A stretch of DNA of 21,718 bases from Amoeboradix gromovi X-113 (lineage: Eukaryota; Fungi; Sanchytriomycota): NCBI GenBank assembly GCA_018985225.1, contig JADGIF010000090.1, forward strand, positions 1 to 21,718, given 5' to 3'. The notes beneath the pieces are model-generated. The model saw nothing but the letters and a program-made list of their open reading frames with translations, searched no databases and had not been told where the DNA came from. This document shows, in pieces, positions 1 to 21,718 of this stretch. Every line of letters starts with the position of its first letter. The stretch's first letter is position 1. A program made the translations under genes and the position numbers.

Positions 1-150
1 ATACAAAGAGTTATCTATTTTCCTTTTATACTCGTCAACTCCGCAACTAGCTGAATGTCCACTCGCCTCTTGAATCCATAAAGTAATAAAGCTGAAATAA
101 TGTTCAAAGTTTTTATAGAAAGTTAGTCCAGTTTTTATATTTGATGTCCC
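1..150 (-). mobile_element. Copy A: left end of a TIR transposon of the Fanzor-carrying family; the element continues beyond the window start
   Basis: 123-150 (ttagtccagtttttatatttgatgtccc) matches the TIR at 8539-8566 with 2 mismatches. Subterminal ~92-122 resembles ~8507-8538. A minus-strand TATAAAAG lies at 23-30, 120 bp from the terminus (118 bp in copy B). Confidence 0.85.
23..30 (-). promoter_or_regulatory. Candidate TATA box (TATAAAAG) in the transposon left end, copy A
   Basis: Same motif at nearly the same distance from the TIR as 8441-8448 in copy B, amid otherwise diverged sequence. Confidence 0.45.
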
Positions 151-359: not shown

Positions 360-1256
360 ATGACTTCAGACTTTAAGTCCATCCTATTTGAAAACGTAAT
401 TCCTGTAGCGGAATCCAATTTGCGTCCAATTATAAGAGACAAGGCTATTGATACTATGACGAATCAAAAAGAGACAATTGACTTTAATTTACTCAAGTAT
501 ATTAAAGCGGCATTTGAAGAAGCCCAGGAGAAAACGAAAGAAAAATTAAAGGTATTTCACATTCTAGAATCTATTTTGAAGAAAGATGTGCTTGACAAAA
601 TTTTTGGCGAAGAGTCGTATAACAAGGTGTTTAGGCAGGTAGTTCAATTTTATGAAGAGTCTAAACCTGAAGCAGGCGACAAAGCAGCAGATGCTACCAT
701 TGATGCACTTAAAGATTCCATAAACCTCGTTTCTAGAAATGATAAAGATAGTACTATCACAGACAGAAATATATTTTCTGATTTCAAAAATGAAATGAAA
801 TCAGCTCTATCTGATGTTGCTTCTGGTGGCTCAATGTTTAACGAGAAAATAGACCACATTAAAAGCTCGCTTTTAGATAAATTTGATTTGATTGTACAGC
901 AAACTTTGAATGTAGTAAAAGGAAAAATAGACGTAAAAACTCGTGAATATATTGCTGAACATTTCCATGATAGATCTTCAGATTTGATGAACAAACTAGA
1001 TACAACACCCAACAGTGACCGCGGCTTTGACGATGGAATTAAATCTTTTTTTCACAAAGCAGCAGATAAAGTTCATCAGCATGCTCTAGACTTAATTGAT
1101 AATCCGAAAGAAAAGATTGATTCAGTACTGAAAGAGTTGCAGGAAAAGATTGCTACTGAAGTTATGGAGGAGGTGCAGAAAGTGTTAGACTTGATTCGAT
1201 CCAACTCCAAAAGCGAGATTAATGAGTGGTTCACGAATAAATTTCATTTAAAATGA
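360..1256 (+). CDS. Hypothetical 298-aa charged, probably all-alpha-helical protein of unknown function
   Basis: Long ATG-TGA ORF with protein-like K/E/D/L-rich amphipathic composition; no motif recognised. Confidence 0.75.
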   Translation: MTSDFKSILFENVIPVAESNLRPIIRDKAIDTMTNQKETIDFNLLKYIKAAFEEAQEKTKEKLKVFHILESILKKDVLDKIFGEESYNKVFRQVVQFYEESKPEAGDKAADATIDALKDSINLVSRNDKDSTITDRNIFSDFKNEMKSALSDVASGGSMFNEKIDHIKSSLLDKFDLIVQQTLNVVKGKIDVKTREYIAEHFHDRSSDLMNKLDTTPNSDRGFDDGIKSFFHKAADKVHQHALDLIDNPKEKIDSVLKELQEKIATEVMEEVQKVLDLIRSNSKSEINEWFTNKFHLK

Positions 1257-4737: not shown

Positions 4738-5450
4738 AGAGACTGTAAGAGGGAGTTGCAAAAAATAAACAAGCCCAGCCTGAAGCAGCTAAAGAAATAC
4801 ATTAAATAGAAATTTCAAAGGCGGAAAAGTTACTATTCCAAACAGCATCCTAATTTGAGACTGGTATTGGTAAAGCTAAGGCTTCAAGCATGAAATAAGA
4901 TGATAGAAAAGAAGGAATGATGCATATTTTAAAAACTGAGAATTCCAGAAGATTGCACAAATAAATTGTGGCAAGACACGATTTACTCAAAGAAATGTCG
5001 GATTTGGCAGAGCAAGAAGCTTCGTTTGAATGATACTAAAACTAGCAAATTTGGGTCAGTGTAAATAAATCCGTTTATTAAATATGCCGTCCTAGAGTCA
5101 AACTGTACTAGTTGTCTGATTAATCTGGATTGATCTATTGAGCCGAATTGGTGTTGAGCTTAGATTAATCTTAAGTTACATTTCTAGCTGCTGTTATCTA
5201 GTTTACACTGAGGTGAATATCTGTTAAAAAATTCAGATTATAGAAAGTCTAATAAGTAACAGTCTCTACCTTGTCCAAAAAGCGGAATTGGAAACGAATA
5301 TTCGCCAAAAGCATACGCGATGAAACATGATATACTAACATCAAAATCAGTCGCCTAGTTTTAAAAGTAGCTGTCCCATATCAAGTTTTTTACTGGAAAG
5401 TGATATTGTGTTGGAACATTCTCACTTACGAATTAATTTTGAAACAGGAT

Positions 5451-8089
5451 ATGCTAAATAGCAACTTAATTTGGCTGGTTCTTGGTGTTGTTTTGCACAC
5501 TATATTTGCACTATCGATATTTGACATCTATTTTGTATCTCCTATTGTAGATATTAAGCCTATTCCTTTAAAATATCGTCACTCTAAACGTGTGGTAATT
5601 GCTGTTGCTGATGGTCTTCGCCATGATACCTTTTATAATCCAAAATTCAATAACAATACTGCACTAGTATCCCCGTTTGTATTTTCCAAAGTATTTCAAG
5701 GTGCTTATGGTACCAGTTTGTGCTCTGTTCCTACTGAAAGTAGACCGGGTCATATGTCTTTGTTTTGTGGAATTACCGAGGATCCCAGTGCTGTACTAAA
5801 GGGATGGTCAAAGAATCCTGTTGAAGTTGACTGTATTTTTAATAACACTAATTCTTATTTGTTTGGTGATCTTGGTATTACTCACACGTATGTTCCCCAT
5901 ATTGAGTTGTACCTTGAGAACGGCCATCTAATTGGTTATGATGACAAGCATTATATTGACGGATTTCCTCAATATGACTTTAAGACAGATTATTTAAGAA
6001 TGAACAAATTTGTTAGAGATGGAGTTTTTAATTTATTTGAAAAAGCAAAATCCAACTCAACTTTGCTAAAACAATTGCATGAGCCTAGCATATTCTTTTT
6101 CCATTTTTGCGGTGTAGATAGTGCAGGCCACGCATTCAGACCCCATTCTGTGGAATATGTAAATACTGTTAAACAAGTTGATAAGTATTTGGAAGAAATA
6201 TCAGTCTTGTTCAACTCATTCTATGGCCAGCCTGATGAGTCAGAGACTCAAAACATGGACTCGGATACTACCTGGATATATACTGCTGATCATGGAATGA
6301 GTGATCGTGGTTCTCATGGCGATTCTGATCCAAATAGCGTGAAAACTCCATTTGTAATTTGGGGTCCCAGAATCAAACCGAGCTATCATTCTAACCCTCA
6401 TGAACTGTCAGCATACGAGGATTATTATAAAGAATGGTTGGAAATGAATCGCTTGCAGTATAATATAAAAAACAATCTATTGCCTTCGCCGTTAACCATA
6501 AATCAGATTGATATTGCCTCACTTATATCCGTTAGCATGGGAATTTCTATTCCCAGCAATAATCTCGGTACGATTCCTTGGTTGCTATTAAATCAGGAAT
6601 ATCAATATCCAGCATTATTGTCTAATTACAATCAACTGAGATCATTGATGAGTCACAAAGAACACGAGAAGCAGCTGCAGCATAGATACTGGCGCTTTAC
6701 TCCATTTAATTCTACCACTGATTTTAGAAAGGATAGCATTCCAGATTTACTTAAGACAATTTCAAGTGTGAAACAAGGAATACAGTATTACCAGACTTAT
6801 GACAAGCTATTTGTACAACTCTTGGTCACTAGTGGATACGTGCTGTGGATAGCATGTAGTGCGCTCAAGTTTTTGACAAGCGGTAGAATACGTGGCACCC
6901 AGTCCGATATTAACTTGTCATTGGTGTTGTGGACCACTTCAGTGATTATAGCAGGATTTAGAGCAACTACATGGTCACACGTAGGATACATAATGCTAAA
7001 TACAATACTGCTGACATTGCTAATACCTCTAAGATATGAAATGACGGAGCTCAGCAGAGTCGATAAAATTCTAGAAATACTGTTTTGTCTGCTTTGGACA
7101 AGTGCGCTTTCTCAGTCATTTATTGATGGCACTGTGCTATCATATTTTTATTTTATTGTAGGCCCATTATATTTGCTATTTAGCAGCAAGTTGAACAATT
7201 TGTTATTCTGTATATTTGCCTTATTGCTAGCCTTTTTCCCATATATTCCAATACCAAACGAAGCGCATGTACTAGAATTGTAATTCTAAACTAATTTAGG
7301 ACAGCAAGCGGTTTATTTGCTTGCTTTATTGGTTTTGTTATCAATAATAGGTATATGAAAACCAGGATAGGTAAGTCTTTGGGGTATGTTCTTTTGATAT
7401 GTGCGTTGGGAAGCGTAGTACTTTTGAATGATCAAAAGCAAAACAACTTGACCTGGGGGTTATTGTTACTGCCGGTAATAACAGTACTAACATGTAAAAT
7501 GTCTGATTTATCCCAAAAAGAAAAAATCATCGGTTTGTACCTGGGCTGTTTGCCTCTTTACATAATTCTTAGCTTAAAGTATGAGCCGTTATTTTACTCT
7601 GTTTATTTTGTAGTACTCTTTATGTTTTACTTGATAGAAAAGGATGCATCTCAGCAGGGACCAGGTGTACCATATAAGCTATATCTTAGATTGGGAATGT
7701 TTCTATTGCTATTCATATACACATCGTTCTTTTCAACAGGTAACTTGGCAAGTTTTGGATCCTTTTCACTCGCATCAATTGATAGATTTACAACCAAATT
7801 TGATCCGTTTTTGATGGGAGCACTATTGTTGTTAAAGATATTGATTCCGTTTATATTAACCAGCGCTGTAGTTTACGGTGTAGCAATAACCTGGCATATA
7901 AAACCGGTAATAATCTATTTTACTAGTGTAGCCTTTTCAGATATAATGACGATTCGTTTCTTCTACTCTATAAGAACCCAAGGGTCATGGTTGGAAATGG
8001 GAACTTCGATGACGCGGTATTTAATTGCATCACTTTTTATTGTTATATTGCTGATATTGTTTGGTATAGCAAAGATTGTTATGAACTGA
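5451..8089 (+). CDS. MCD4: GPI ethanolamine-phosphate transferase 1 (PIG-N/Mcd4); exons 5451-7279 and 7300-8089, ~872 aa
   Basis: SIFDIYFVSP, VADGLR, PTESRPGH, DSAGH and YTADHGMSDRGSHG alkaline-phosphatase-superfamily motifs; multi-TM C-terminus with FFSTGNLAS, PFLMGALLLLKILIP and GSWLEMG. The two ORF-track ORFs join in frame across the intron. Confidence 0.95.
7280..7299 (+). other. 20-nt spliceosomal intron in MCD4/PIGN (GTAATTCTAAACTAATTTAG)
   Basis: GT-AG with CTAAT branch motif; removal eliminates the TAA and joins the frame of 7355..8089. Confidence 0.9.
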
Positions 8090-8097
8090 ATAATAAA

Positions 8098-8210
8098 TGA
8101 TTTGATGCTAACCTTTTGGGACACCAAATATAAAAACTAGACTAAGCCGCCTTTAAAGGAGGTGCCCATAAGGAGGAAATACTATTAGTAATAAAAGTAT
8201 TTCTTCTCTC
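8098..8210 (-). ncRNA. Candidate omegaRNA (scaffold ~8210-8118 plus flank-derived guide ~8117-8098), copy B
   Basis: Lies downstream of the Fanzor relic and spans the right end; conserved with copy C; folds into stems GAAAUACU/AGUAUUUC, GGGCACC/GGUGUCC and UAAAGGC/GUUUUUA. Boundaries are inferred. Confidence 0.55.
8118..8145. repeat. Terminal inverted repeat (element right end)
   Basis: gggacaccaaatataaaaactagactaa; identical to 20924-20951. Confidence 0.92.
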
Positions 8211-8412
8211 AAACCAATTTTCTTTCATTAATTCCATTCCCCTCTCTAAATAAAACAAGATGACTCACTATCTCTTTCAAATATATAAGATCTCTGAGTG
8301 TCTAAGCAAAAGGTGCATTATCTACTACTTTACCACTGTTATCTTCCTTTTTCTTTTTCTTCTTACCACATTTCGTACAGCTTATTTTTTGTTTTCTCTT
8401 CTTATTAGTCAT
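8209..8412 (-). pseudogene. Internally deleted Fanzor/TnpB relic
   Basis: ATG at 8412 gives MTNKKRKQKISCTKCGKKKKKK..., then after a frameshift *CTFCLDTQRSYIFERDSESSCFI*RG, which aligns with the zinc-finger/RuvC-III end of copy C (CNFCLDDQRPHIFERDAGSSSFILKRG). Confidence 0.75.
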
Positions 8413-8440
8413 TGTTTCTAAGATTTTGATGGATGAAGAG

Positions 8441-8448
8441 CTTTTATA
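8441..8448 (-). promoter_or_regulatory. Candidate TATA box (TATAAAAG) ~30 nt upstream of the element ATG at 8412
   Basis: Canonical motif, positionally conserved in copy A. Confidence 0.45.
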
Positions 8449-8538
8449 CTAAAATAATTTACTTGAACTAGTCAGATTAATTTAATTTACTATCGGTTAA
8501 CACACGCTTGAAAAAATGATTCAAACTATTTCAGAAAG

Positions 8539-8566
8539 TTAGTCTAGTTTTTATATTTGATCTCCC
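8539..8566. repeat. Terminal inverted repeat (element left end)
   Basis: Reverse complement gggagatcaaatataaaaactagactaa; matches 8118-8145 and 123-150. Confidence 0.92.
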
Positions 8567-8998
8567 TTTTGTTGTTTTTTGTTCTTCAAATAGATGAAGC
8601 CCATTCTAACAAACGTCCACGTTTTCAAGTAGGTGGAACACTTAGAACCACAATAGATTGCTCATTAATTGATCATGCCCTACAAAATAAAATACGAAAA
8701 ATGACACAAAAAGTGCCATTGAAAAAGAGAAAAAAGATGATAATCAACTACTAGAAAGAACATTACAGACAGTAAGGCAGAACATGAAAATGGCTATCGG
8801 TTGAGATATTGCAACAATTCTCCAAGCGCTAACCAGCCAATCTATTTCGAAAAAGATATTCCCAGTGCATCTTTCACATTGAATAAAGCTTAATGGCGTA
8901 TCACGAGATTGAGATATCTTTGCAGGTGTCCTCCGAGTTGGAGTTAAGGACACTTTGTCATGATGGGTCCCAAATAGGATTACAAACATTGTTTTGCA

Positions 8999-12460: not shown

Positions 12461-13723
12461 TTAAACGGCTTGCCATATCTTTATTTTATAATCTTCACTT
12501 GTTGTGACAAACATATTAGCAGTGTTAGGTGAAACAACCGTACCAATATTGCTAGTTACACAATTAATAAATTGTTCGTGTGCTTTCTCAATCGTCTTGG
12601 TTTGTTTGCCTGTTCTTAAATCAAATACACGAATAAATCTATCATCTCCAACGCTGATGATACACGAAGGATACTCAAAATCACCCGGAATGTCAGCATA
12701 TTGAATGCATATACTCCTAATCCAGTTTTCGTGCCCGATGAAGTTGTAGAGGCATTCTTTTGTTATCAAATCCCATAGCTTGATAGTTTTGTCGCGACCA
12801 GCCGATATCAGCAAGCTCATGTTCCGTGTGGATTTCACCAGATCTTGGGCATCTTTAGTGCATATCTTGGGGACAAACTTTACAGTCTCTACCACGTGTT
12901 CATGGCCAAACAATTCGACTTCTTCTTGTTTTGTAGACAAGTTCCATATTTTGATAAAGTTATCATTTCCAGCGCTAGCTAAATGACTTTCACTGGTATC
13001 AATACAACGAATCCACTCGTTATGCCCAAAAAGTACATTTTCGCAGTTTCCTGTGACAATATCCCATTCTCTAATGGTACTATCTCTAGAACAACTGTAT
13101 AAATATTTGGATTCCAAGTCGAAAGCCAGCATACTAATAGCCTCGTCATGCCCATAGCAAGTTTTAATGCATTGATAGTTATTATCAGTATCCCAAAACT
13201 TGATTGAGGTATCAGCACTGGCAGAGACCAAAAGCTTCCCACTCTTGGAGTACAATACAAAATTGACTGCCTTTGTGTGTCCCTTACAAGTGCGTTCAAA
13301 ATCACCAGTCTCGTAGTCGTAAATTTTGATGGTAGAATCCTCAGATCCTGTTGCAACCGTAGTGTATATAGGATGTACTGCTGCAGATAACACGCTCCCT
13401 TTGTGGCCTTCTAAAGTATGTTTAGGTGCAGTCTTTGGCAAGGGTGTGAAATCGAAATTCTGTTTTTTACGAAATACATTCTTGTCGATTTCTTTTTGCA
13501 AATCTGAAAGCTCTTTTTCGAGATCCATATTTCTTTTCTGCAGTCTAGAGACAGTTATCCACTTTCGTTCAAGCAAACCATTATGTGCAGTAGTGGGAGT
13601 TAACTGAGATTCTTCTTGCAGAAGTTTAGCACTTGCTACCAGTTGATTCTCATTTAGAAATGCTATTATCGAAAGAATTAAATCACTTTTAGCTTTGTCA
13701 GACAAAATGGACATTTGGGACAT
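12461..13723 (-). CDS. PAC1: LIS1/Pac1/NudF dynein regulator
   Basis: N-terminal LisH, GLLERKWITVSRLQKRNMDLE coiled coil, WD40 repeats (SEDSTIKIYDYETGDFERTCKGHTKAV, GHEHVVE, RDKTIKLWD, GHENWIR). Confidence 0.95.
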   Translation of the reverse strand: MSQMSILSDKAKSDLILSIIAFLNENQLVASAKLLQEESQLTPTTAHNGLLERKWITVSRLQKRNMDLEKELSDLQKEIDKNVFRKKQNFDFTPLPKTAPKHTLEGHKGSVLSAAVHPIYTTVATGSEDSTIKIYDYETGDFERTCKGHTKAVNFVLYSKSGKLLVSASADTSIKFWDTDNNYQCIKTCYGHDEAISMLAFDLESKYLYSCSRDSTIREWDIVTGNCENVLFGHNEWIRCIDTSESHLASAGNDNFIKIWNLSTKQEEVELFGHEHVVETVKFVPKICTKDAQDLVKSTRNMSLLISAGRDKTIKLWDLITKECLYNFIGHENWIRSICIQYADIPGDFEYPSCIISVGDDRFIRVFDLRTGKQTKTIEKAHEQFINCVTSNIGTVVSPNTANMFVTTSEDYKIKIWQAV

Positions 13724-13990
13724 GCACTCTGAAAAGTAGACGGGGGTAAAAACGGATGACGAAAAGAAAAAGAAAGAGTTCCTGATGGTAAAAACCTCTC
13801 AGAAAACACACGAAGTAAGACCTACAGGAATATTGCGTTAACCTAAACCATCTCTAGACGCAGAAAACACAAGCAAGGTAGGCCTGGTGAATAATTCATA
13901 TACCGACAGAAATACAACGCGCCTTCATGATCTTCCGTTCTCGCCCTTGAGAAATTCTCTTTATTTAATTTTACCTATCAAACATCTCCT

Positions 13991-16900
13991 ATGCTTTCAT
14001 TTCAATTGAATCAAAAAATTTATACCAAAGATGCCAATATTATCAAGTTTGATCATAACCATGAGTTACTCTGGGTCGGAGATACCACAGGCTGTCTAAA
14101 ATCCTACAATCAGGGTTCAGTTTACTCTTCCACCGCAGTCAGTCACGATAACGTAGTGGATGTGCACATAGATAGCAATTTAATATATGCTATTGGTCCT
14201 TCTACTTTAAAATGTATAAACCATAGAGGCTTACCTAAACTATTTAGATCCGGTTTACAAGGTTTAAGCTGTTTAACAAAATCTCATAAATATTTACATC
14301 TTGGTGGAGATAGTTTGACGGACATAGATGTAGCCACTAACTCTGTTGTTCACACTAGGAACTACCCAACCACTAGAATTAAATCATATATGAATAATTT
14401 ATACACCAGTGATAAGAATGAATTATACATTATTGATATCAGGAGTGATGAATGCTTGGCAATGACTCATTCTAATGGTTTTGTCACTAACATTGAATGT
14501 TTTGGTAACTATGTTCTTACTACCGGTACAACTTTACAAAATTCCTTGTACACACCTGATCCATTTGTAACAGTGTTTGATATAAGAACTTTAAAGGTGT
14601 TAAAAGTAATACCGTTCTCAGGAGGTGCCGTTCATTTAAAATCGCATCCTCGTGTAAGCAGTGCGTTCTTCATTGGATCTATGGATGGCAACTTGATTTG
14701 CCATGATATTGTTAATAACAGGAGCACTAATTGCAAACCGTTAAATGTAATTACAGCTGAGATCGATATTTCGTTATCTGGTGACTGCGTTGGTGCGATT
14801 GATAATTTTGGAAGTGTTAACATATTTACATCAAACGAAGATGCCAAGTTTAATGTTCCGCATCTATCAATGGAACTAGAATATGCGACTTACGTACCAT
14901 TTCATCCTGTTTTACCAACAGGCTCTTCATTTTCATTAATAGAAAAACCTATACGCGGTCCACTGGGCTTTTTGTCTGACGACATGAGCATTTTCACAAA
15001 CAAGAAGATTGTTCCACCACCGATAGATCCTGCTATACTTAAAGTAGCCAAGTACAATAATTCGATTGGGTATGCTCCCAACTTGAACTTGTTCAAAAGA
15101 AATCAGTATCATTTTGGAAAAGTCGAAAAACAAGATTCTGTTGTATTTCATAGTCAAAAGAAAAATCCAAGGAAAAGGTCTGTCAGTGCAAACTCCAATG
15201 CATCCTCAACAAAGGACTACGAGAATAAAAAACACATTCCAGATCACTATATCAGTAAGCATATCAAATACTCTAAATTTGGCGTAGAGGACTTTGATTT
15301 CACTGTATTTAATCAAACTAAACACCCTGGGTTAGAAAACCATATCAAGAACTGCTATCTAAACTCTTTGTTGCTGCTTTATTACTTTATTCCAGATTTT
15401 AACAACTTTTGTACTAACCATATCCTAGCAGCATGTGACTCATTAAACTGCTTCATATGCGAACTAGGCTTCTTGTTCAAAATGCTGGATACAGCGCAAG
15501 GAGTCAATTGCCAGGCCTCTAATTTCCTTATGGCATTTAGCAACAACCCCAAAACATCACTACTGCACTTGAGTGAACCATTGGATAGCAAAAAATTCCA
15601 CGAAGTCATACAGAAATCGAACAGCTTTATATTAGAGCAGATATATGTAGATTCGTCCCTGAATGAAAAGAAATTGTTTGAGGATTATTTTGGATACAAA
15701 TACGAAATATCAAAAGTTTGTCGGAATTGCATGATCGAAGTTAAAAGCTCCTCGCTAAAATTTGTATTGGATTTGAATTACAAACTTGATAACGATGAGC
15801 AATGTAGTTTTGAGAAAGTGTTGCACAATTCACTGAACAGCGTTGATAAGATTAAGAAGCTATGTAAAGACTGCGGTAAGGCCACAATCCATGAAGTATC
15901 AAAAAATGTGGTAAAACTACCTAACGTGATGCTGATAAACACAAACACAATAAATTTAGCTCATAAATCAATTTATTGGACAAAATTGAACAAATTCCAA
16001 AAGGATATATCGGGTAAGCTTTCTCTTGCATTGAGTTACAGCGGCGTCGAATACGACTTGAAAGGTGTACTATGTCAGATCCTAACCGAAGGAAATAAAG
16101 AACATTTGATCTCGCAACTGCATAAAAACGAATGGGTACATTTTAATGACTTTCTGGTCCAAACAGTTCCTGAATATGAAGTAGTTCAGAATCCTAAAGG
16201 ATGGAAGTCACCATCTATATTTATGTACCGCAAGCATAGATACATAGAATTGCCTATAAACACTCTGGATGAATCGGTGATGATTGAGTTTTTACAGTCT
16301 AGTTCCACATCCATAGCCCCTATACTCTCACCAAGCGTTTATCCTGTTATACCACTGCAAGAGTACGAGAACATTGGAAGTGGTTTTTTATGTGCGTTAG
16401 ATGCAGAATTTGTTAGTCTGCAGGAAGAGCTGGTAGAGTTTAAAAGCGACGGCAGTAAAACCATCAAGAGACCTTGTAGATTGCATCTGGCACGAGTCAG
16501 TATTTTAAGAGGAGAAGGATTTCACGAGAAGAAGCCTTTTATAGATGACTATATAATACCCAAGGAAGAAATACAAGATTACTTAACTCAATTTAGTGGC
16601 ATCAAACCAGGCGATTTAGATCCAAAAACTAGTAGAAAGAGATTGCTGCATTTGAAGACAGTTTATAAAAAGATAAGATGGCTAATAGATCTAGGATGCG
16701 TCTTTGTGGGACACGGATTAAAGAAGGATCTGAGAATCATAAGTATTTGTTCAATAATGTAGATATTCATATACCGAGTGATCAGATTATAGATACTGTG
16801 GAACTCTACCATTTAGAGAGCTACCAGAGATACCTATCCCTAAAATATTTGGCTCACAAAGTTTTGCAAAAGAGCATACAAGTAGAATCACACGATAGCA

Positions 16901-17016
16901 TAGAGGACGCACTAACAGCTCTAGAATTATACAAATACTATCAAACAATAGAGGATGTCCCAGCGTTTCTGAACAGGCTTTATGCAGATGGTAGGAAAAC
17001 CAATTTTAAGATATGA
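13991..17016 (+). CDS. PAN2: PAN2 deadenylase catalytic subunit (WD40-UCH-DEDD exonuclease); exons 13991-16742 and 16763-17016, ~1001 aa
   Basis: IKYSKFGVEDFDF, CELGFLFKML, GVNCQASNF, FNDFLV, ALDAEFV, DYLTQFSGI, FVGHGLKKDLRIIN and HDSIEDA. Confidence 0.96.
16743..16762 (+). other. 20-nt spliceosomal intron in PAN2 (GTATTTGTTCAATAATGTAG)
   Basis: GT-AG; removal gives DLRII-N-IHIPSDQIIDTV, the expected Pan2 exonuclease sequence. Confidence 0.9.
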
Positions 17017-17491
17017 ACACTGCGTTGTAAATTGCCACAGATTGTACATGTTTTACTAGTAAATGCTTCGTAATATTCAAGTAACATTTTTACTACTTCT
17101 TTAATTTGAACTATTATTTCAAAACAGTTCCTGAGAACAGAACAGTGCTTTTTAGAACGTTTTGGTTTCTTTAGATTTGAGATGTTCTGGTTCTAGAATT
17201 TAGGAGAATTTAGGATCGATGAGGTAAGATATCAAGTTTTTATGTAATTATATAGCTGCAAATTATTTTCATCTTGTTTTTTGTATCCCTTAACTACATT
17301 TTCGTTGTCAATTACTCTCTTACACAAGTTTTTTCTACCTTTAGTTCATCTTTCTTAAGTTTTCAGATGTTAATGACAATTTCAGTATTTGCATGTTTGG
17401 TTTGGCTACATTTCAATGGAATTTCAACATCTAATAGGCAACTCTTTTTCTTTCGACATCATTTTAACCCCAAGTTTCCTTTTCATTAAGC

Positions 17492-20400
17492 ATGTCCCAT
17501 TTATTGCCTGAAGTACAGCCTCGGATTATTAATGATAACCAACGTTCTTTAATTCATTGCAATAGCAAGAGATCGTTTTTTGCGAAGGAGCTAATAATCA
17601 GCAAGCCTGAGAAAGCTGGTGAGGACGCATGGATTGTTGAAAGATTGTTAGACTATGATGCCAATAAATATCTTGTTTTATGGCACGGAAATGAACAGTC
17701 TTGGCAGCCTTATCAGGATTTATTTGACTGTCCCGACTTAGTATACCAATTCTGGCAAGAACAGAAGAAAATTAATATCTCTCAGCCAAGTGAAGTTCGT
17801 CATCAGCTCAAGGAAATGCAGATGTATGCTCAAGACAACTCAACTGAGACCGATGAAGCGAACTCTGATGAAGAACCATTTGCACCTGGTAAAACCGGAA
17901 GTCGCAGTAGTGACGAAAGTGGTGTTCAAAAAACTGCTCACGATTTAAAAAGACCTGCATACGACGAGCCCTCTTCTCTTTCTGACGATTACGATGACCT
18001 TAGCGAACTCAGTGCTATTTCATATCACAATCGCAAACGTAAAAAAGCTAAAAGGGCTGAAGAGAATCCAGAGTATTTAGTTCAAGAAATACTGACTTGG
18101 CAAGAGGAGCCTGATGGAACCCGCTCATTTGCCTGTAAATTAGAGGACACTAGTTACCACGACCTTACATGGATTCCCGAATCGGAACTGCAGGTTGTTT
18201 CTGCTGCAAAATATCGAAATTTTATGAAAGCTAGATTTGTTGATCCTCCTATTCCTGTTGAAGACACTTTTGATCCAGCCTATTTAAAAGTGCATAAAGT
18301 CATGATTGTTGAAGAGGATGAACTATTAGATAACACATCAGTGAAATTTTACATGATAAAATGGGAAAATTTAAGCTATCTATATAAGACGTTTGAAACT
18401 GACATTGAAAGTTTGCCCAACTTCCAAAACGCACTGGATAGGTACAATCTATCACTAGAATGTGCTAAAGAGATGTTCAAACGGCCGCCAAAGAAGAGAT
18501 CTTACTCAAAGATAACTGCGCAACCTGATTTCATCCCTAGTCACTTGATATTAAAGACACACCAACTAGACGGTTTGAACAGAATATTATACAACTGGTC
18601 TATTCATAAATCAATGATCTTAGCTGATGAAATGGGCCTTGGAAAAACCATTCAAACTATTGTGTTTATATCGTATTTATACTTCAAATATAGGTTAGCA
18701 CCATTCATAGTTATAGTGCCCAATAGTACTCTTGATAACTGGGAACGTGAATTCCAGAAATGGGCCCCATTCCTGTCTGTTTTATTGTTTGCTGGAGACG
18801 TAGAAGATAGAGAATCGGTGAAATCGTACGAGGCCTTTTTCCAAGGTAACCTTAGGTTTCATGTCTTGATAACCACGTATAGTACTGTTAGATTAGACAC
18901 GTTGTTCATTAAGAAATGTGGTCCATTCGCCTGCTTAATTGTTGATGAAAGTCACAATTTGAAGAACGAGCGTAGTATTCTGTACAATTGCGTAGGGCAG
19001 CTTCAAGTCGATTTTACTTTATTCCTCACCGGTACGCCTGTGCAAAATAAAATCAGAGAATTATTTGCATTATTAAACTTCTTGGATCCAAAAGAATTTG
19101 GAAATATAAATGACCTTGAACAAGAGTATTCCAACCTACATGGACAGTTAGTTATAGATCTTTTGAACAAGCTTAGACCTTACATTCTAAGAAGAACAGT
19201 AAAACATATTGCTAGCGAGTTGCCACTGAAGAAGGAAGTTGTCATTAAATGTGGGATGACGAAACTGCAAAAAGAGCTCTACAAGGATGTTATATCAAAG
19301 AACGCTGCGTTATTGGTAGCGCTGGACCAATCAACAAAAGGAACTAGAACCGATGTATGGATGCAGTTAATGCGCATCAGTATGCACCCCTATGCTGTGG
19401 ATGCAGATATTGAACCAAGGGATTTATCCTCTGCTGAAGAATTACGGTTGCTGATTAATAGCAGTGGAAAATATACCATACTAATTCAAATTATGGATAA
19501 ACTTTATGAAACCAACAAAAAAGATCCAGGCACAGGCAGAGTGATAGTGTTTGCACAACATAAAAGATCTTTAGATATTTTACAAGACATACTATTTAAA
19601 AAGCAATACCCATGTTTTCGAATGGATGGAGATACCAATAGATTAGAAAGACAAAGTATGTTTGATGCATTTAATAATGATCAAGAGTCATTTGCGTTCA
19701 TCATGACAACTAGATGCGGGAGTGAAGGCATCAATTTAACTGCTGCTAGCACTGTAATATTGATGGATATGGACTTTAATCCAACAGTAGATAAGCAAGC
19801 TATTGGTAGGTGTTACAGAATAGGACAGGTAAACAGGGTTTTGGCTATTAAGCTGGTAACTACCAATACTGTTGATGAACGCAGATTAGTGATTGCTACA
19901 AAAAAATCAACATTAAACAGGCTGTTAGTTAAGCCACTAGACAGTGCAGAGGATTTGAACTCTACAGATATAGATGCTATGATTAAGCATGGAAGTAAGC
20001 AGATGTTTGAGAATGTAGAGGATGATGCACATATCAAACTAACCGATGAGGAGTTACGAGAGTGCTTGGATAAAAGTAATATAGAAGCAACAGAGGAGCT
20101 TATTAACGATGAGGAAGATGCATTTAACACCATAACACCAGTCCAAGCCATAAAATTAGATATTGAAGTGAAAGAAAGTGAGCAAATGAAGGAAAAGTTG
20201 GACAGTGGGGACAATGAATTTTGGAATGATTTAATAGTTAAGAAGCTAAAGGAGGAAGAGGAAAAAAGAGCTAAGGAAATGTTAGGAAGAGGCATGAGAA
20301 AAAAGAAAAATCATTTACAGAATCATTTGATAGATGAAACAGAGAATACTAAGGATGGTGACTTTGAATATTTTAGTGATTATGATGACGAAGATGACGA

Positions 20401-20713
20401 ATTGAAGGATATTGTAGAGGAAGAGAAGATGGTTGGAGACTTGCTGAATCAAAACAAAATGGATACGGATAAAAACATAAACAAACTATTAAATGGCATA
20501 CAAGAGCATAGAAATTGCTTGAGAGATAAAGGACTATTGAGGCCAGAAAAGAGCAATGTATTATGCTGGTTATGCAATGATTTTTATCATCATTTAATGA
20601 GCTGTCCAGTTATCAGAGATGTAAAACAGTTGAGATACAAGCTAGTGGAATTTGAAAACAACCCAGGCTTAAAGATGATGATTGAGAGAGTATTGATGAT
20701 TGCGATGTCGTAA
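17492..20713 (+). CDS. CHD-family SNF2 chromatin remodeller, Mi-2/Mit1-like
   Basis: Chromodomains, ILADEMGLGKTIQ, DESH box, TGTPVQN, GINLTAA..VI..D.DFNP..D.QA..R.YRIGQ, LGRGMR, and a C-terminal CxxC...H...CP zinc knuckle. Confidence 0.9.
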   Translation: MSHLLPEVQPRIINDNQRSLIHCNSKRSFFAKELIISKPEKAGEDAWIVERLLDYDANKYLVLWHGNEQSWQPYQDLFDCPDLVYQFWQEQKKINISQPSEVRHQLKEMQMYAQDNSTETDEANSDEEPFAPGKTGSRSSDESGVQKTAHDLKRPAYDEPSSLSDDYDDLSELSAISYHNRKRKKAKRAEENPEYLVQEILTWQEEPDGTRSFACKLEDTSYHDLTWIPESELQVVSAAKYRNFMKARFVDPPIPVEDTFDPAYLKVHKVMIVEEDELLDNTSVKFYMIKWENLSYLYKTFETDIESLPNFQNALDRYNLSLECAKEMFKRPPKKRSYSKITAQPDFIPSHLILKTHQLDGLNRILYNWSIHKSMILADEMGLGKTIQTIVFISYLYFKYRLAPFIVIVPNSTLDNWEREFQKWAPFLSVLLFAGDVEDRESVKSYEAFFQGNLRFHVLITTYSTVRLDTLFIKKCGPFACLIVDESHNLKNERSILYNCVGQLQVDFTLFLTGTPVQNKIRELFALLNFLDPKEFGNINDLEQEYSNLHGQLVIDLLNKLRPYILRRTVKHIASELPLKKEVVIKCGMTKLQKELYKDVISKNAALLVALDQSTKGTRTDVWMQLMRISMHPYAVDADIEPRDLSSAEELRLLINSSGKYTILIQIMDKLYETNKKDPGTGRVIVFAQHKRSLDILQDILFKKQYPCFRMDGDTNRLERQSMFDAFNNDQESFAFIMTTRCGSEGINLTAASTVILMDMDFNPTVDKQAIGRCYRIGQVNRVLAIKLVTTNTVDERRLVIATKKSTLNRLLVKPLDSAEDLNSTDIDAMIKHGSKQMFENVEDDAHIKLTDEELRECLDKSNIEATEELINDEEDAFNTITPVQAIKLDIEVKESEQMKEKLDSGDNEFWNDLIVKKLKEEEEKRAKEMLGRGMRKKKNHLQNHLIDETENTKDGDFEYFSDYDDEDDELKDIVEEEKMVGDLLNQNKMDTDKNINKLLNGIQEHRNCLRDKGLLRPEKSNVLCWLCNDFYHHLMSCPVIRDVKQLRYKLVEFENNPGLKMMIERVLMIAMS

Positions 20714-20903
20714 TAATAAATAAATCATCAATTTAAATATGCTTAATAAGTTTCGACAAAATATCAGTGTCTAGTAGTTAATTCAAGTTGTAGATTTTGA
20801 CTGTTTTACGAAACAGCAGCCTTCAAGAGCCCACCATAACGCACATATAGATATTAATGTCTGTTTAGAGAATTAAAAATTAAATCAGTTTACTTTTCTG
20901 AAG

Positions 20904-21012
20904 TGCAGACCATATAAGCATATGGGACACCAAATATAAAAACTAGACTAACTGGTTTTTAAAGGAGGTGCACCATACGGAGGAAATGCTATTATTAATA
21001 AAAGATCTTCTA
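20904..21012 (-). ncRNA. Candidate omegaRNA (scaffold ~21012-20924 plus guide ~20923-20904, AUAUGCUUAUAUGGUCUGCA), copy C
   Basis: Between the Fanzor stop codon and the element end; stems GCACC/GGUGU and UAAAAAC/GUUUUUA are conserved with copy B. Confidence 0.55.
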
Positions 21013-21360
21013 TTATACCAATTTTCTTTTAATTACTTTCAATCCCCTCTTCAAAATAAAACTAGAAGACCCTGCATCTCGTTCAAATATATGAGGTCTT
21101 TGATCATCTAAGCAAAAGTTGCATTTTCTTAGACGGTACTCTTTCTTTCGATTGGTGATAACACTTAAACACTCGATGGTCGAATATGCCTCGTTTATAA
21201 TAAATAATTTCTGACCATACAATTTACCTTTCTGCGAAAATCTCCTCTTGAAAGTCTAGTGTCCAAGCGACTGCATATCTCGCTTTTGATTCTTTGGTAA
21301 GTTCTGCGTCATTACTTGTGACGCAAATTCAGGAAGCAAGATCACTGGATACTTACGCAA
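20924..21360 (-). mobile_element. Copy C: right end of the same TIR family carrying the 3' part of a Fanzor2 gene; left end not seen
   Basis: TIR 20924-20951 identical to 8118-8145; ~200 bp of homology with copy B; Fanzor coding relic inside. Confidence 0.88.
21013..21360 (-). pseudogene. 5'-truncated Fanzor2 (TnpB-family RNA-guided RuvC endonuclease) with an in-frame TAG at 21258-21256
   Basis: Minus-strand translation: LRKYPVILLPEFASQVMTQNLPKNQKRDMQSLGH*TFKRRFSQKGKLYGQKLFIINEAYSTIECLSVITNRKKEYRLRKCNFCLDDQRPHIFERDAGSSSFILKRGLKVIKRKLV*. This matches in order the Fanzor2 motifs Y..IllP.F...M, sHy.Fk.rl..K, vnEaYTS..C, C..C and DRD.n.a.nIl. Confidence 0.88.
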
Positions 21361-21510
21361 ATGATGTAGAATCAGTTATTGCTGCAGTCAAGGATGAAAG
21401 CGACATCCAACGTTTAGCCAAAAAACTTGGAATTGATGAAGAAATGTCAAATAGTGAGATGAAAAAGACTATCAAGAAAATGAGTCTGGACAACTTGCAC
21501 ATAAAAAAAT

Positions 21511-21718
21511 GGGTTCAACGGCTGGCTGCCACACACCATCTCTGGCGCATCGCGACACCGGAACAGCCTTTCTGTATCCTCAACTGTCGATACTAGCACA
21601 TCACCCCATCCCAGCATGGATTCCGACTTAGAGGCGTTCAACCGTTATCCTACGAGCGTAGCCGAGCTGCCCTAGCTGACCAGCTAACAGCACACACCAG
21701 AGGCTCGAATCAACGGTT
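21511..21718 (-). rRNA. 3' end of a divergent large-subunit (25S/28S) rRNA gene; continues beyond the window, 3' boundary approximate
   Basis: Minus strand reads AACCGTTGATTCG...GGATAACGGTTGAACGCCTCTAAGTCGGAATCCATGCT, matching the eukaryotic LSU sequence just after the sarcin-ricin loop. GC content rises sharply at ~21511. Confidence 0.85.

Follow-up and report, generated by a model that had tools for sequence, protein, structure and literature searches.

The Fanzor relic at positions 20924-21361 of a contig from the fungus Amoeboradix gromovi X-113 is probably a dead genomic mosaic, made of the 3' end of a Fanzor1 element with terminal inverted repeats (TIRs) and a fragment of an unrelated Fanzor2-type gene. 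The locus cannot make any nuclease. It lies on the minus strand near the end of the window, by which we mean the whole stretch of 21,718 nucleotides that was analyzed (contig JADGIF010000090.1). The window is gene-dense with 36% GC, and EukProt contains seven of its proteins with exactly the same sequence. Its genes include a PIGN-like gene (5400-8089) and a PAN2-like gene (13991-17016), each split in two open reading frames (ORFs), probably by short introns, and a 298-aa helical protein (360-1256, plus strand) for which neither Pfam nor NCBIfam gave a convincing match and for which relatives at 90% identity are lacking.

The initial annotation read the relic through one stop codon as about 115 codons of a single Fanzor2 gene. 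The read-through frame contains the following features:

21333-21331, minus strand: Pro at the canonical RuvC-II site (sequence)
21258-21256, minus strand: in-frame TAG (sequence)
21192-21190, minus strand: alternative Glu (sequence)
21123-21112, minus strand: CNFC, the second CxxC (sequence)
21078-21076, minus strand: RuvC-III Asp (ERD) (sequence)
21015-21013, minus strand: terminal stop codon (sequence)

On re-reading of the minus strand, the order and the coordinates of these motifs are all exact. The frame had been described as ending about 90 bp short of a TIR, and the stop is indeed 89 bp from the outer end of the TIR and 61 bp from its inner end. Two properties were missed in that first reading. 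The first CxxC in the read-through frame is without its second Cys (ECLSV), and the two halves of the peptide match two distinct protein families.

The peptide was searched piecewise, with the stop read as X. A match to a TnpB/Fanzor profile, which had been named beforehand as a check, was obtained with Pfam Cas12f1-like_TNB (E 2.2e-4), which covers residues 2-50 of the 80-aa piece that follows the TAG; NCBIfam guided_TnpB matches at E 0.016, and phmmer matches of the 80-aa piece reach E 8e-12 in a search of 1.8 billion proteins. The homology of the read-through to nucleases exceeds chance. The phmmer matches of the 80-aa piece fall into two classes: a protein that we call P0004 matches at residues 1-49, and six others (P0001, P0002, P0003, P0005, P0006 and P0008) match mainly at the C-terminus. 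Searched alone, the 5' segment matches only P0004 (69%, E 1e-22), whereas the 3' segment matches all members of the other family, at up to 77%, but not P0004. Judged from these sequence comparisons, the 115-codon read-through is a mosaic of two dead pieces that come from different, already known nuclease families and lie end to end.

The TIR, the second CxxC and the ERD-type RuvC-III belong to a separate, Gly-type Fanzor1 family. The parts of the window concerned are:

21013-21144, minus strand: Fanzor1 3' coding fragment with the second CxxC (CNFC) and RuvC-III (ERD); 77% and 71% amino acid identity to P0001 and P0002, respectively
20924-20951, minus strand: 28-bp right (3') TIR of the Fanzor1 element family, identical in the L010 right TIR and in L005, L008, L009, L011 and L012
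20920-20923, no strand: 4-bp AT-rich target site ATAT, with its left-end partner outside the window (sequence)

The 3' fragment matches the profile of the Fanzor1 family with an hhalign E of 1e-14, and P0004 hardly matches the same profile. Its DNA is 78% identical to that of a sibling from a soil metagenome (L005), the identity beginning at 21144, and the 28-bp TIR has exact matches in five JGI metagenome loci. A complete element is present at L010 (JACCDU010508025.1, 151-2221). It is 2071 bp long and has a left TIR and an intact 642-aa ORF, the stop codon of which falls within the right TIR. L008, L009 and L011 are right ends of L010-type elements at other insertion sites.

The L010 protein has TDG, DPG, a Gly at RuvC-II, a Glu six residues before the CxxC, and ERD. 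In five full-length members of the family, WG.G at the canonical RuvC-II site, E570 (six residues before the zinc finger) and the DPG at RuvC-I (D357-P358-G359) are invariant; the DPG is absent from the window fragment. The WED-domain motif is TDG in L010 and SDG in the four other full-length members. Full-length members carry ERDxxSA at RuvC-III, so the ERD context that had been called atypical is normal for the family behind the TIR. These features of L010 and its relatives, the DPG included, agree with the published marks of Fanzor1, among them a conserved Gly at RuvC-II with an alternative Glu before the zinc finger (PMC3627910, PMC10711439) and TDG in the WED domain (PMC10711439).

The family is divergent. 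The L010 protein has no Pfam or NCBIfam match, and the only Fanzor matched by the family profile is Guillardia theta Fanzor1 (GtFz1), in a collinear but weak alignment (E 0.024). The homologue searches returned two to four close proteins each, which is too few for a good model or tree, and the structure model of L010 is of low confidence (pLDDT 53). With this model the top seven Foldseek matches are all Fanzor1 (SpuFz, GtFz and PpFz; best E 1.8e-4), and Fanzor2 is absent among the best 50 matches listed.

Further full-length members of the family (515-642 aa) are present on giant-virus-like contigs (L006:9826-11590, L013:9900-11948 and L001:7004-8854). The termini are GAGACAC in L006 and GTG/GGG with an AATT duplication in L013. 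The genes that adjoin the L006, L008 and L013 elements encode VLTF3, D5 primase-helicase and Rif-like proteins, and these neighbors point to giant viruses. With a member in soil metagenome L005, the Fanzor1 TIR family extends beyond the A. gromovi genome. L005 itself has two right ends in opposite orientations within 640 bp (67-146 and 470-640), one of them with the identical TIR.

Two other copies of the element are found in the window:

8118-8566 (8114-8570 with the target-site duplication), minus strand: sister mini-element of 449 bp with both TIRs and a TTTT target-site duplication (TSD); its DNA is 81% identical to the right end across 218 bp
123-150, minus strand: left TIR of a third copy, which runs off the start of the window

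The copy at 20924-21361 has a single TIR within the window; the TIR pair and the TSD are seen in the sister copy. A more divergent Fanzor1 relic lies beside the sister element at 8750-8985 on the plus strand (RLRYC...FEKD; family profile E 4e-8), with a basic, NLS-like start near 8700 and a GGGTCCC end near 8975. Weak TIR look-alikes with six to seven mismatches in 25 are present in promoter regions at 5355-5377, 13717-13770 and 17445-17498; two of them overlap the start codons (ATGTCCC) of LIS1-like and CHD-like genes, and so they may be due to chance.

The 5' piece has a different origin. It occupies the following interval:

about 21136-21361, minus strand: Fanzor2-type fragment with the RuvC-II region, the TAG, the alternative Glu and a broken first CxxC; 67-69% amino acid identity to P0004

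P0004, the closest relative of the 5' piece, is an A. gromovi protein from EukProt. Its best PDB match is the mimivirus Fanzor2 9B0L (E 2.2e-7; the next best is E 1.4e-4), it passed the TnpB profiles, and its C-terminal end has CxxC-x14-CxxC. P0004 fits the alternative-Glu pattern ExxxxxxCxxC-x(12,18)-CxxC-x(4,8)-D, of which the window retains the Glu and the first Cys only. A Pro at the canonical RuvC-II site, as in the window piece, is the Fanzor2 state. Replacement of the canonical RuvC-II Glu by Pro or Gly has been described previously (PMC10530073). With its identity to P0004 and with 9B0L as the best solved relative, the half that carries the Pro and the alternative Glu is Fanzor2-like, as had been proposed. 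The RuvC-I region is missing from both the window fragment and P0004. A DPG at RuvC-I distinguishes Fanzor2 from other rearranged TnpB proteins.

The 5' piece is also frameshifted. One base has been lost near 21163, below which the P0004 homology carries on in a different frame (YHQSKERVPS in place of NHQSKESVHS) and then ends; none of 20,000 random pieces scores as well as this shifted-frame match. Related contigs of sequencing run X1 (about 83%) end at 21354-21361, and one of them, which has the extra base at 21163, follows the window from 21361 down to 21136 before it departs. Plasmid and phage TnpB matches to P0004 are only 29-41% identical and are uninformative. Scans of viral contigs with P0004, the TIR pattern and the Fanzor1-family alignment gave no matches. 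Neither a serine recombinase (TnpA) nor an IS607 left end is present at the 5' piece within the window. We infer that the 5' piece is of IS607 origin.

With both families in hand, a single Fanzor2 gene with an unusual RuvC-III inside a TIR transposon, as proposed initially, is barely credible. The motifs do stand in the right order in one frame with both the Pro and the alternative Glu, and TIR-borne Fanzor2 genes (Fanzor2*) exist (PMC10711439). However, P0004 retains a normal RDINxxxN at RuvC-III, the ERD segment and the TIR are common to full-length Gly-type Fanzor1 proteins such as L010, and the sister copy has the same Fanzor1 3' end without the Fanzor2 piece (no P0004 match). A single atypical Fanzor2 was rejected on the split matches and the frame shift. 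Of the original description of a Fanzor2 relic in a compact, early-diverging fungal genome, the Fanzor relic, the fungal genome and the Fanzor2-like half stand, and the single Fanzor2 gene does not. The TIR was thought to delimit an element carrying Fanzor2; the full-length copies with this TIR (L010) or a related one (L013) encode Fanzor1. The central claim of a Fanzor2 captured by the TIR transposon does not hold: the TIR is part of the Fanzor1 family, onto which the Fanzor2 piece has only been joined. Ownership of the TIRs by a separate element had been named beforehand among the grounds for refutation.

The position of the join and its surroundings near the contig end are as follows:

21131-21144, minus strand: junction, with 9-14 nt that match both families at equivalent zinc-finger spacer positions
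21362-21523, no strand: 162 bp that are neither Fanzor1, Fanzor2 nor a recognizable transposase; 21383-21523 is present in X1 with one difference
21524-21718, minus strand: LSU rRNA piece that forms the last part of the contig (GC 56%; Rfam LSU_rRNA_eukarya at 21600-21718, E 1.1e-14)

The Fanzor2 contig aligns down to 21136 and the P0004 homology reaches about 21131; the Fanzor1 homology begins at 21144. No convincing match to the 162-bp segment was found in Pfam, NCBIfam, PDB or the Fanzor1 profile. A short helical open frame on the plus strand spans 21357-21593 and matches no identified family, and a few related X1 contigs cover 21360-21435. X1 contig 7 departs from the window after 21523, and the join to rRNA at the contig end is a probable chimera. 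A reading of 21597-21716 as a LINE reverse transcriptase was rejected, as the stretch has no Pfam match and is rRNA. The rRNA piece is a divergent eukaryotic LSU, and contigs of two groundwater metatranscriptomes match 21625-21718 with one difference; these two metatranscriptomes may hold a close relative of the organism.

It is also possible, though less likely, that the two families are as described and that the join was made in vitro or in silico, by a template switch during multiple displacement amplification (MDA) or by an assembly error near the contig end. MDA chimeras arise at short matches. For the source genomes, sporangia were the starting material of the MDA and the assembly used 2x100 reads; the A. 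gromovi assembly was 48.7 Mb before cleaning, with 36.3% GC (PMC8371127). There are three joins within 400 bp, the last of them to rRNA. The X1 contigs around the join form two sets, which cover 20919 to about 21145 and 21136-21361, respectively. No X1 contig among those listed bridges the join, and from about 20945 to 21383 none has the exact sequence of the window. Against an artefact, both flanks are nearly unchanged in the same run (20600-20945 with no differences and 21383-21523 with one), and contigs drop rare paths next to very abundant repeats, so that the hole proves nothing. The window copy is not a collapsed consensus because it has private bases (e.g., at 21104) that are absent from all of the contigs compared.

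A further possibility is a real capture, in which recombination at equivalent positions of the two zinc fingers produced a hybrid of Fanzor2 RuvC-II with the Fanzor1 RuvC-III, omegaRNA and TIR, functional at first and decayed since. In its favor, the two families meet in near-homologous register, and a single TAG is all that interrupts the reading frame across the join. However, it is the one-base loss near 21163 that offsets the join and keeps the frame open, for which the chance is one in three, and the same loss takes away a zinc-binding Cys. A single contig lies at 21166, an ordinary copy of Fanzor2; the join was not found a second time among the X1 contigs, nor was there any sign that the joined form was amplified. 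In addition, no match among 1.8 billion representatives closely follows both halves, and the RNA scaffolds differ between Fanzor1 and Fanzor2 (PMC10711439). We consider such a hybrid very improbable. Ownership of the TIR by Fanzor1 holds for a genomic mosaic, an artefactual join and a functional hybrid alike.

If the locus is a genomic mosaic, as we favor, the two elements most likely came to be nested or adjacent, in the same orientation, through insertion of one of them, and were then fused by a deletion between short stretches that match in their zinc-finger regions. The window contains no left TIR for this copy, no IS607 left end or Fanzor2 3' remainder, and with no IS607 end or left TIR upstream of 21361, more than one event is needed. 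A clean insertion of the Fanzor1 element into a Fanzor2 gene was rejected because the join lacks a left TIR and the Fanzor2 gene does not resume beyond 20920.

The ends of the Fanzor1 element allow its type to be considered. TSDs of 4 bp are paired in the sister copy (TTTT/TTTT at 8114/8567) and in L013 (AATT/AATT). The L006 flanks are AAAT/AATT and those of L010 do not match, perhaps because the contig merges copies. Zator elements have a TSD of 3 bp. Harbinger elements have one of 2-3 bp, and Fanzor1 proteins are known in Sola2 elements, which have TIRs and 4-bp AT-rich TSDs (PMC3627910). The 4-bp duplications at two complete elements rule out Harbinger/PIF or Zator ends. The GGG..CCC TIR with a short TSD abutting the Fanzor2-like half is as first described (20924-20951, with a family TSD of 4 bp), and of the three end types suggested for it, Sola2 agrees and the Harbinger and Zator types do not. 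No transposase was found beside the complete elements or in the window (L010, L013, L006 and the window were examined), so that the Sola2 assignment comes from the ends. The 3' element is most likely a non-autonomous, cut-and-paste element with Sola2-type ends, the full form of which carries Fanzor1; a Sola-type transposase would presumably act on it in trans.

The right end may also encode an RNA. Two features are predicted:

20920-20978, minus strand: terminal stem-loop that includes the TIR and the TSD, a candidate 3' omegaRNA scaffold of Fanzor1 type (z -5.8 versus shuffles)
20905-20919, minus strand: predicted guide region of about 15 nt on the outer side of the TSD, if the right end is transcribed as an omegaRNA (by extension from published Fanzor1 RNAs)

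In known Fanzor1 RNAs, the terminal stem of the scaffold takes in the TIR and the TSD, and the RNA extends about 15 nt beyond the TSD (PMC10711439). The hairpin z-scores of the right ends are -5.8 in the window, -4.6 in L005, -3.5 in both L010 and L013 and -3.2 in L006. The TIR forms the 3' arm, and the 5' arms differ among L005, L006, L010 and L013. The stem is predicted in six of the seven right ends (weakly in L004 and the sister copy) and in none of the five left ends with the same TIR. Five G.U pairs in the L010 and L013 hairpins hold on the Fanzor strand only. The window hairpin alone folds about equally on either strand, and the support for the strand comes from L010, L013 and the sister copy. 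A consensus fold of four sequences has zero compensatory pairs, and RNA runs X2 and X3 match only the rRNA tail of the window. In their predicted folds, the right ends match a Fanzor1-type terminal hairpin. For SpuFz1, "ghost" loci have been described in which the gene is absent but the RNA works (PMC10432273). By analogy, the retained right end may yield a "ghost" omegaRNA, which would load into a Fanzor1 produced from another locus and could guide it to the sequence next to the element, in the manner of transposon-restoring homing.

Several known systems resemble parts of the locus. The Sola2 elements DFa-1/2/3 and PPa-1/4/5 (Bao and Jurka 2013, PMC3627910) likewise have Fanzor1 at the 3' end, TIRs, 4-bp AT-rich TSDs and derivatives without a transposase. 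They differ in that their TIRs are 12-21 bp rather than 28 bp and their hosts are amoebozoa, whereas the 28-bp-TIR family has fungal and giant-virus-like hosts; unlike theirs, its protein is very divergent, with no Pfam or NCBIfam match, and a transposase was not found beside its elements. Spu-1/SpuFz1 (Saito 2023, PMC10432273) is, like the 2071-bp L010, a single-ORF element of about 2.1 kb with inverted repeats of about 30 nt; it also has many gene-less derivatives that keep the right end, and its RNA overlaps the 3' end of the gene. SpuFz1 is the top structural match of the L010 model, at about 11% identity. However, outside its left repeat Spu-1 carries a conserved CA, where the 28-bp-TIR family has a 4-bp TSD, and the window copy, unlike Spu-1, carries a foreign Fanzor2 piece.

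The 5' piece resembles the IS607-type Fanzor2 ApmFz2 (9B0L) in having a Pro at RuvC-II and a Glu six residues before the CxxC, but it is only about 75 codons long, and RuvC-I, RuvC-III, a right end and a serine recombinase are all missing from the locus. Fanzor2 captured by TIR transposons has been published (Fanzor2*, PMC10711439; also PMC13565253). The Fanzor2* of Chloropicon and mollusc TIR/TSD transposons (Yoon 2023, PMC10711439) is the type of pairing that the initial annotation took to be possibly undescribed. There, several copies of whole Fanzor2 genes lie between their own TIRs, whereas the window has a Fanzor1 TIR and a single joined Fanzor2 fragment. Fanzor1 in 4-bp-TSD TIR elements, Fanzor1 in giant viruses and fungi, and ghost loci are already known. 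A literature search found no paper on a Fanzor1/Fanzor2 fusion, for which one dead, unconfirmed join is a weak case.

The proposed new Fanzor2-transposon pairing falls, and the locus is a fossil. It also holds a caution: when motifs are strung together in order past a stop codon, two Fanzor families can pass for a single odd-looking protein. The TIR family, in turn, is a divergent Fanzor1 lineage missed by Pfam and NCBIfam, with an intact member (L010), readable ends, a TSD and an RNA hairpin, and the 642-aa protein of L010 is a direct candidate for a cleavage assay. An identical 28-bp TIR in giant-virus-like contigs and in a reduced parasitic fungus fits virus-borne spread. Fanzor1 and Fanzor2 families also occur together, with apparent joins between them, in a genome of 10 Mb, which could serve to test for mutual targeting or recombination of two OMEGA systems.

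It is improbable, but worth noting, that Fanzor1/Fanzor2 joins are recurrent and real in A. gromovi, with the two RNA-guided systems both inserting into and cutting each other and repair at the matching zinc-finger sequences swapping the 3' modules. If so, one could see how a Fanzor2 acquires TIR ends together with an RNA of Fanzor1 type, a step of the Fanzor2-to-Fanzor1 model that so far has been proposed and not observed.
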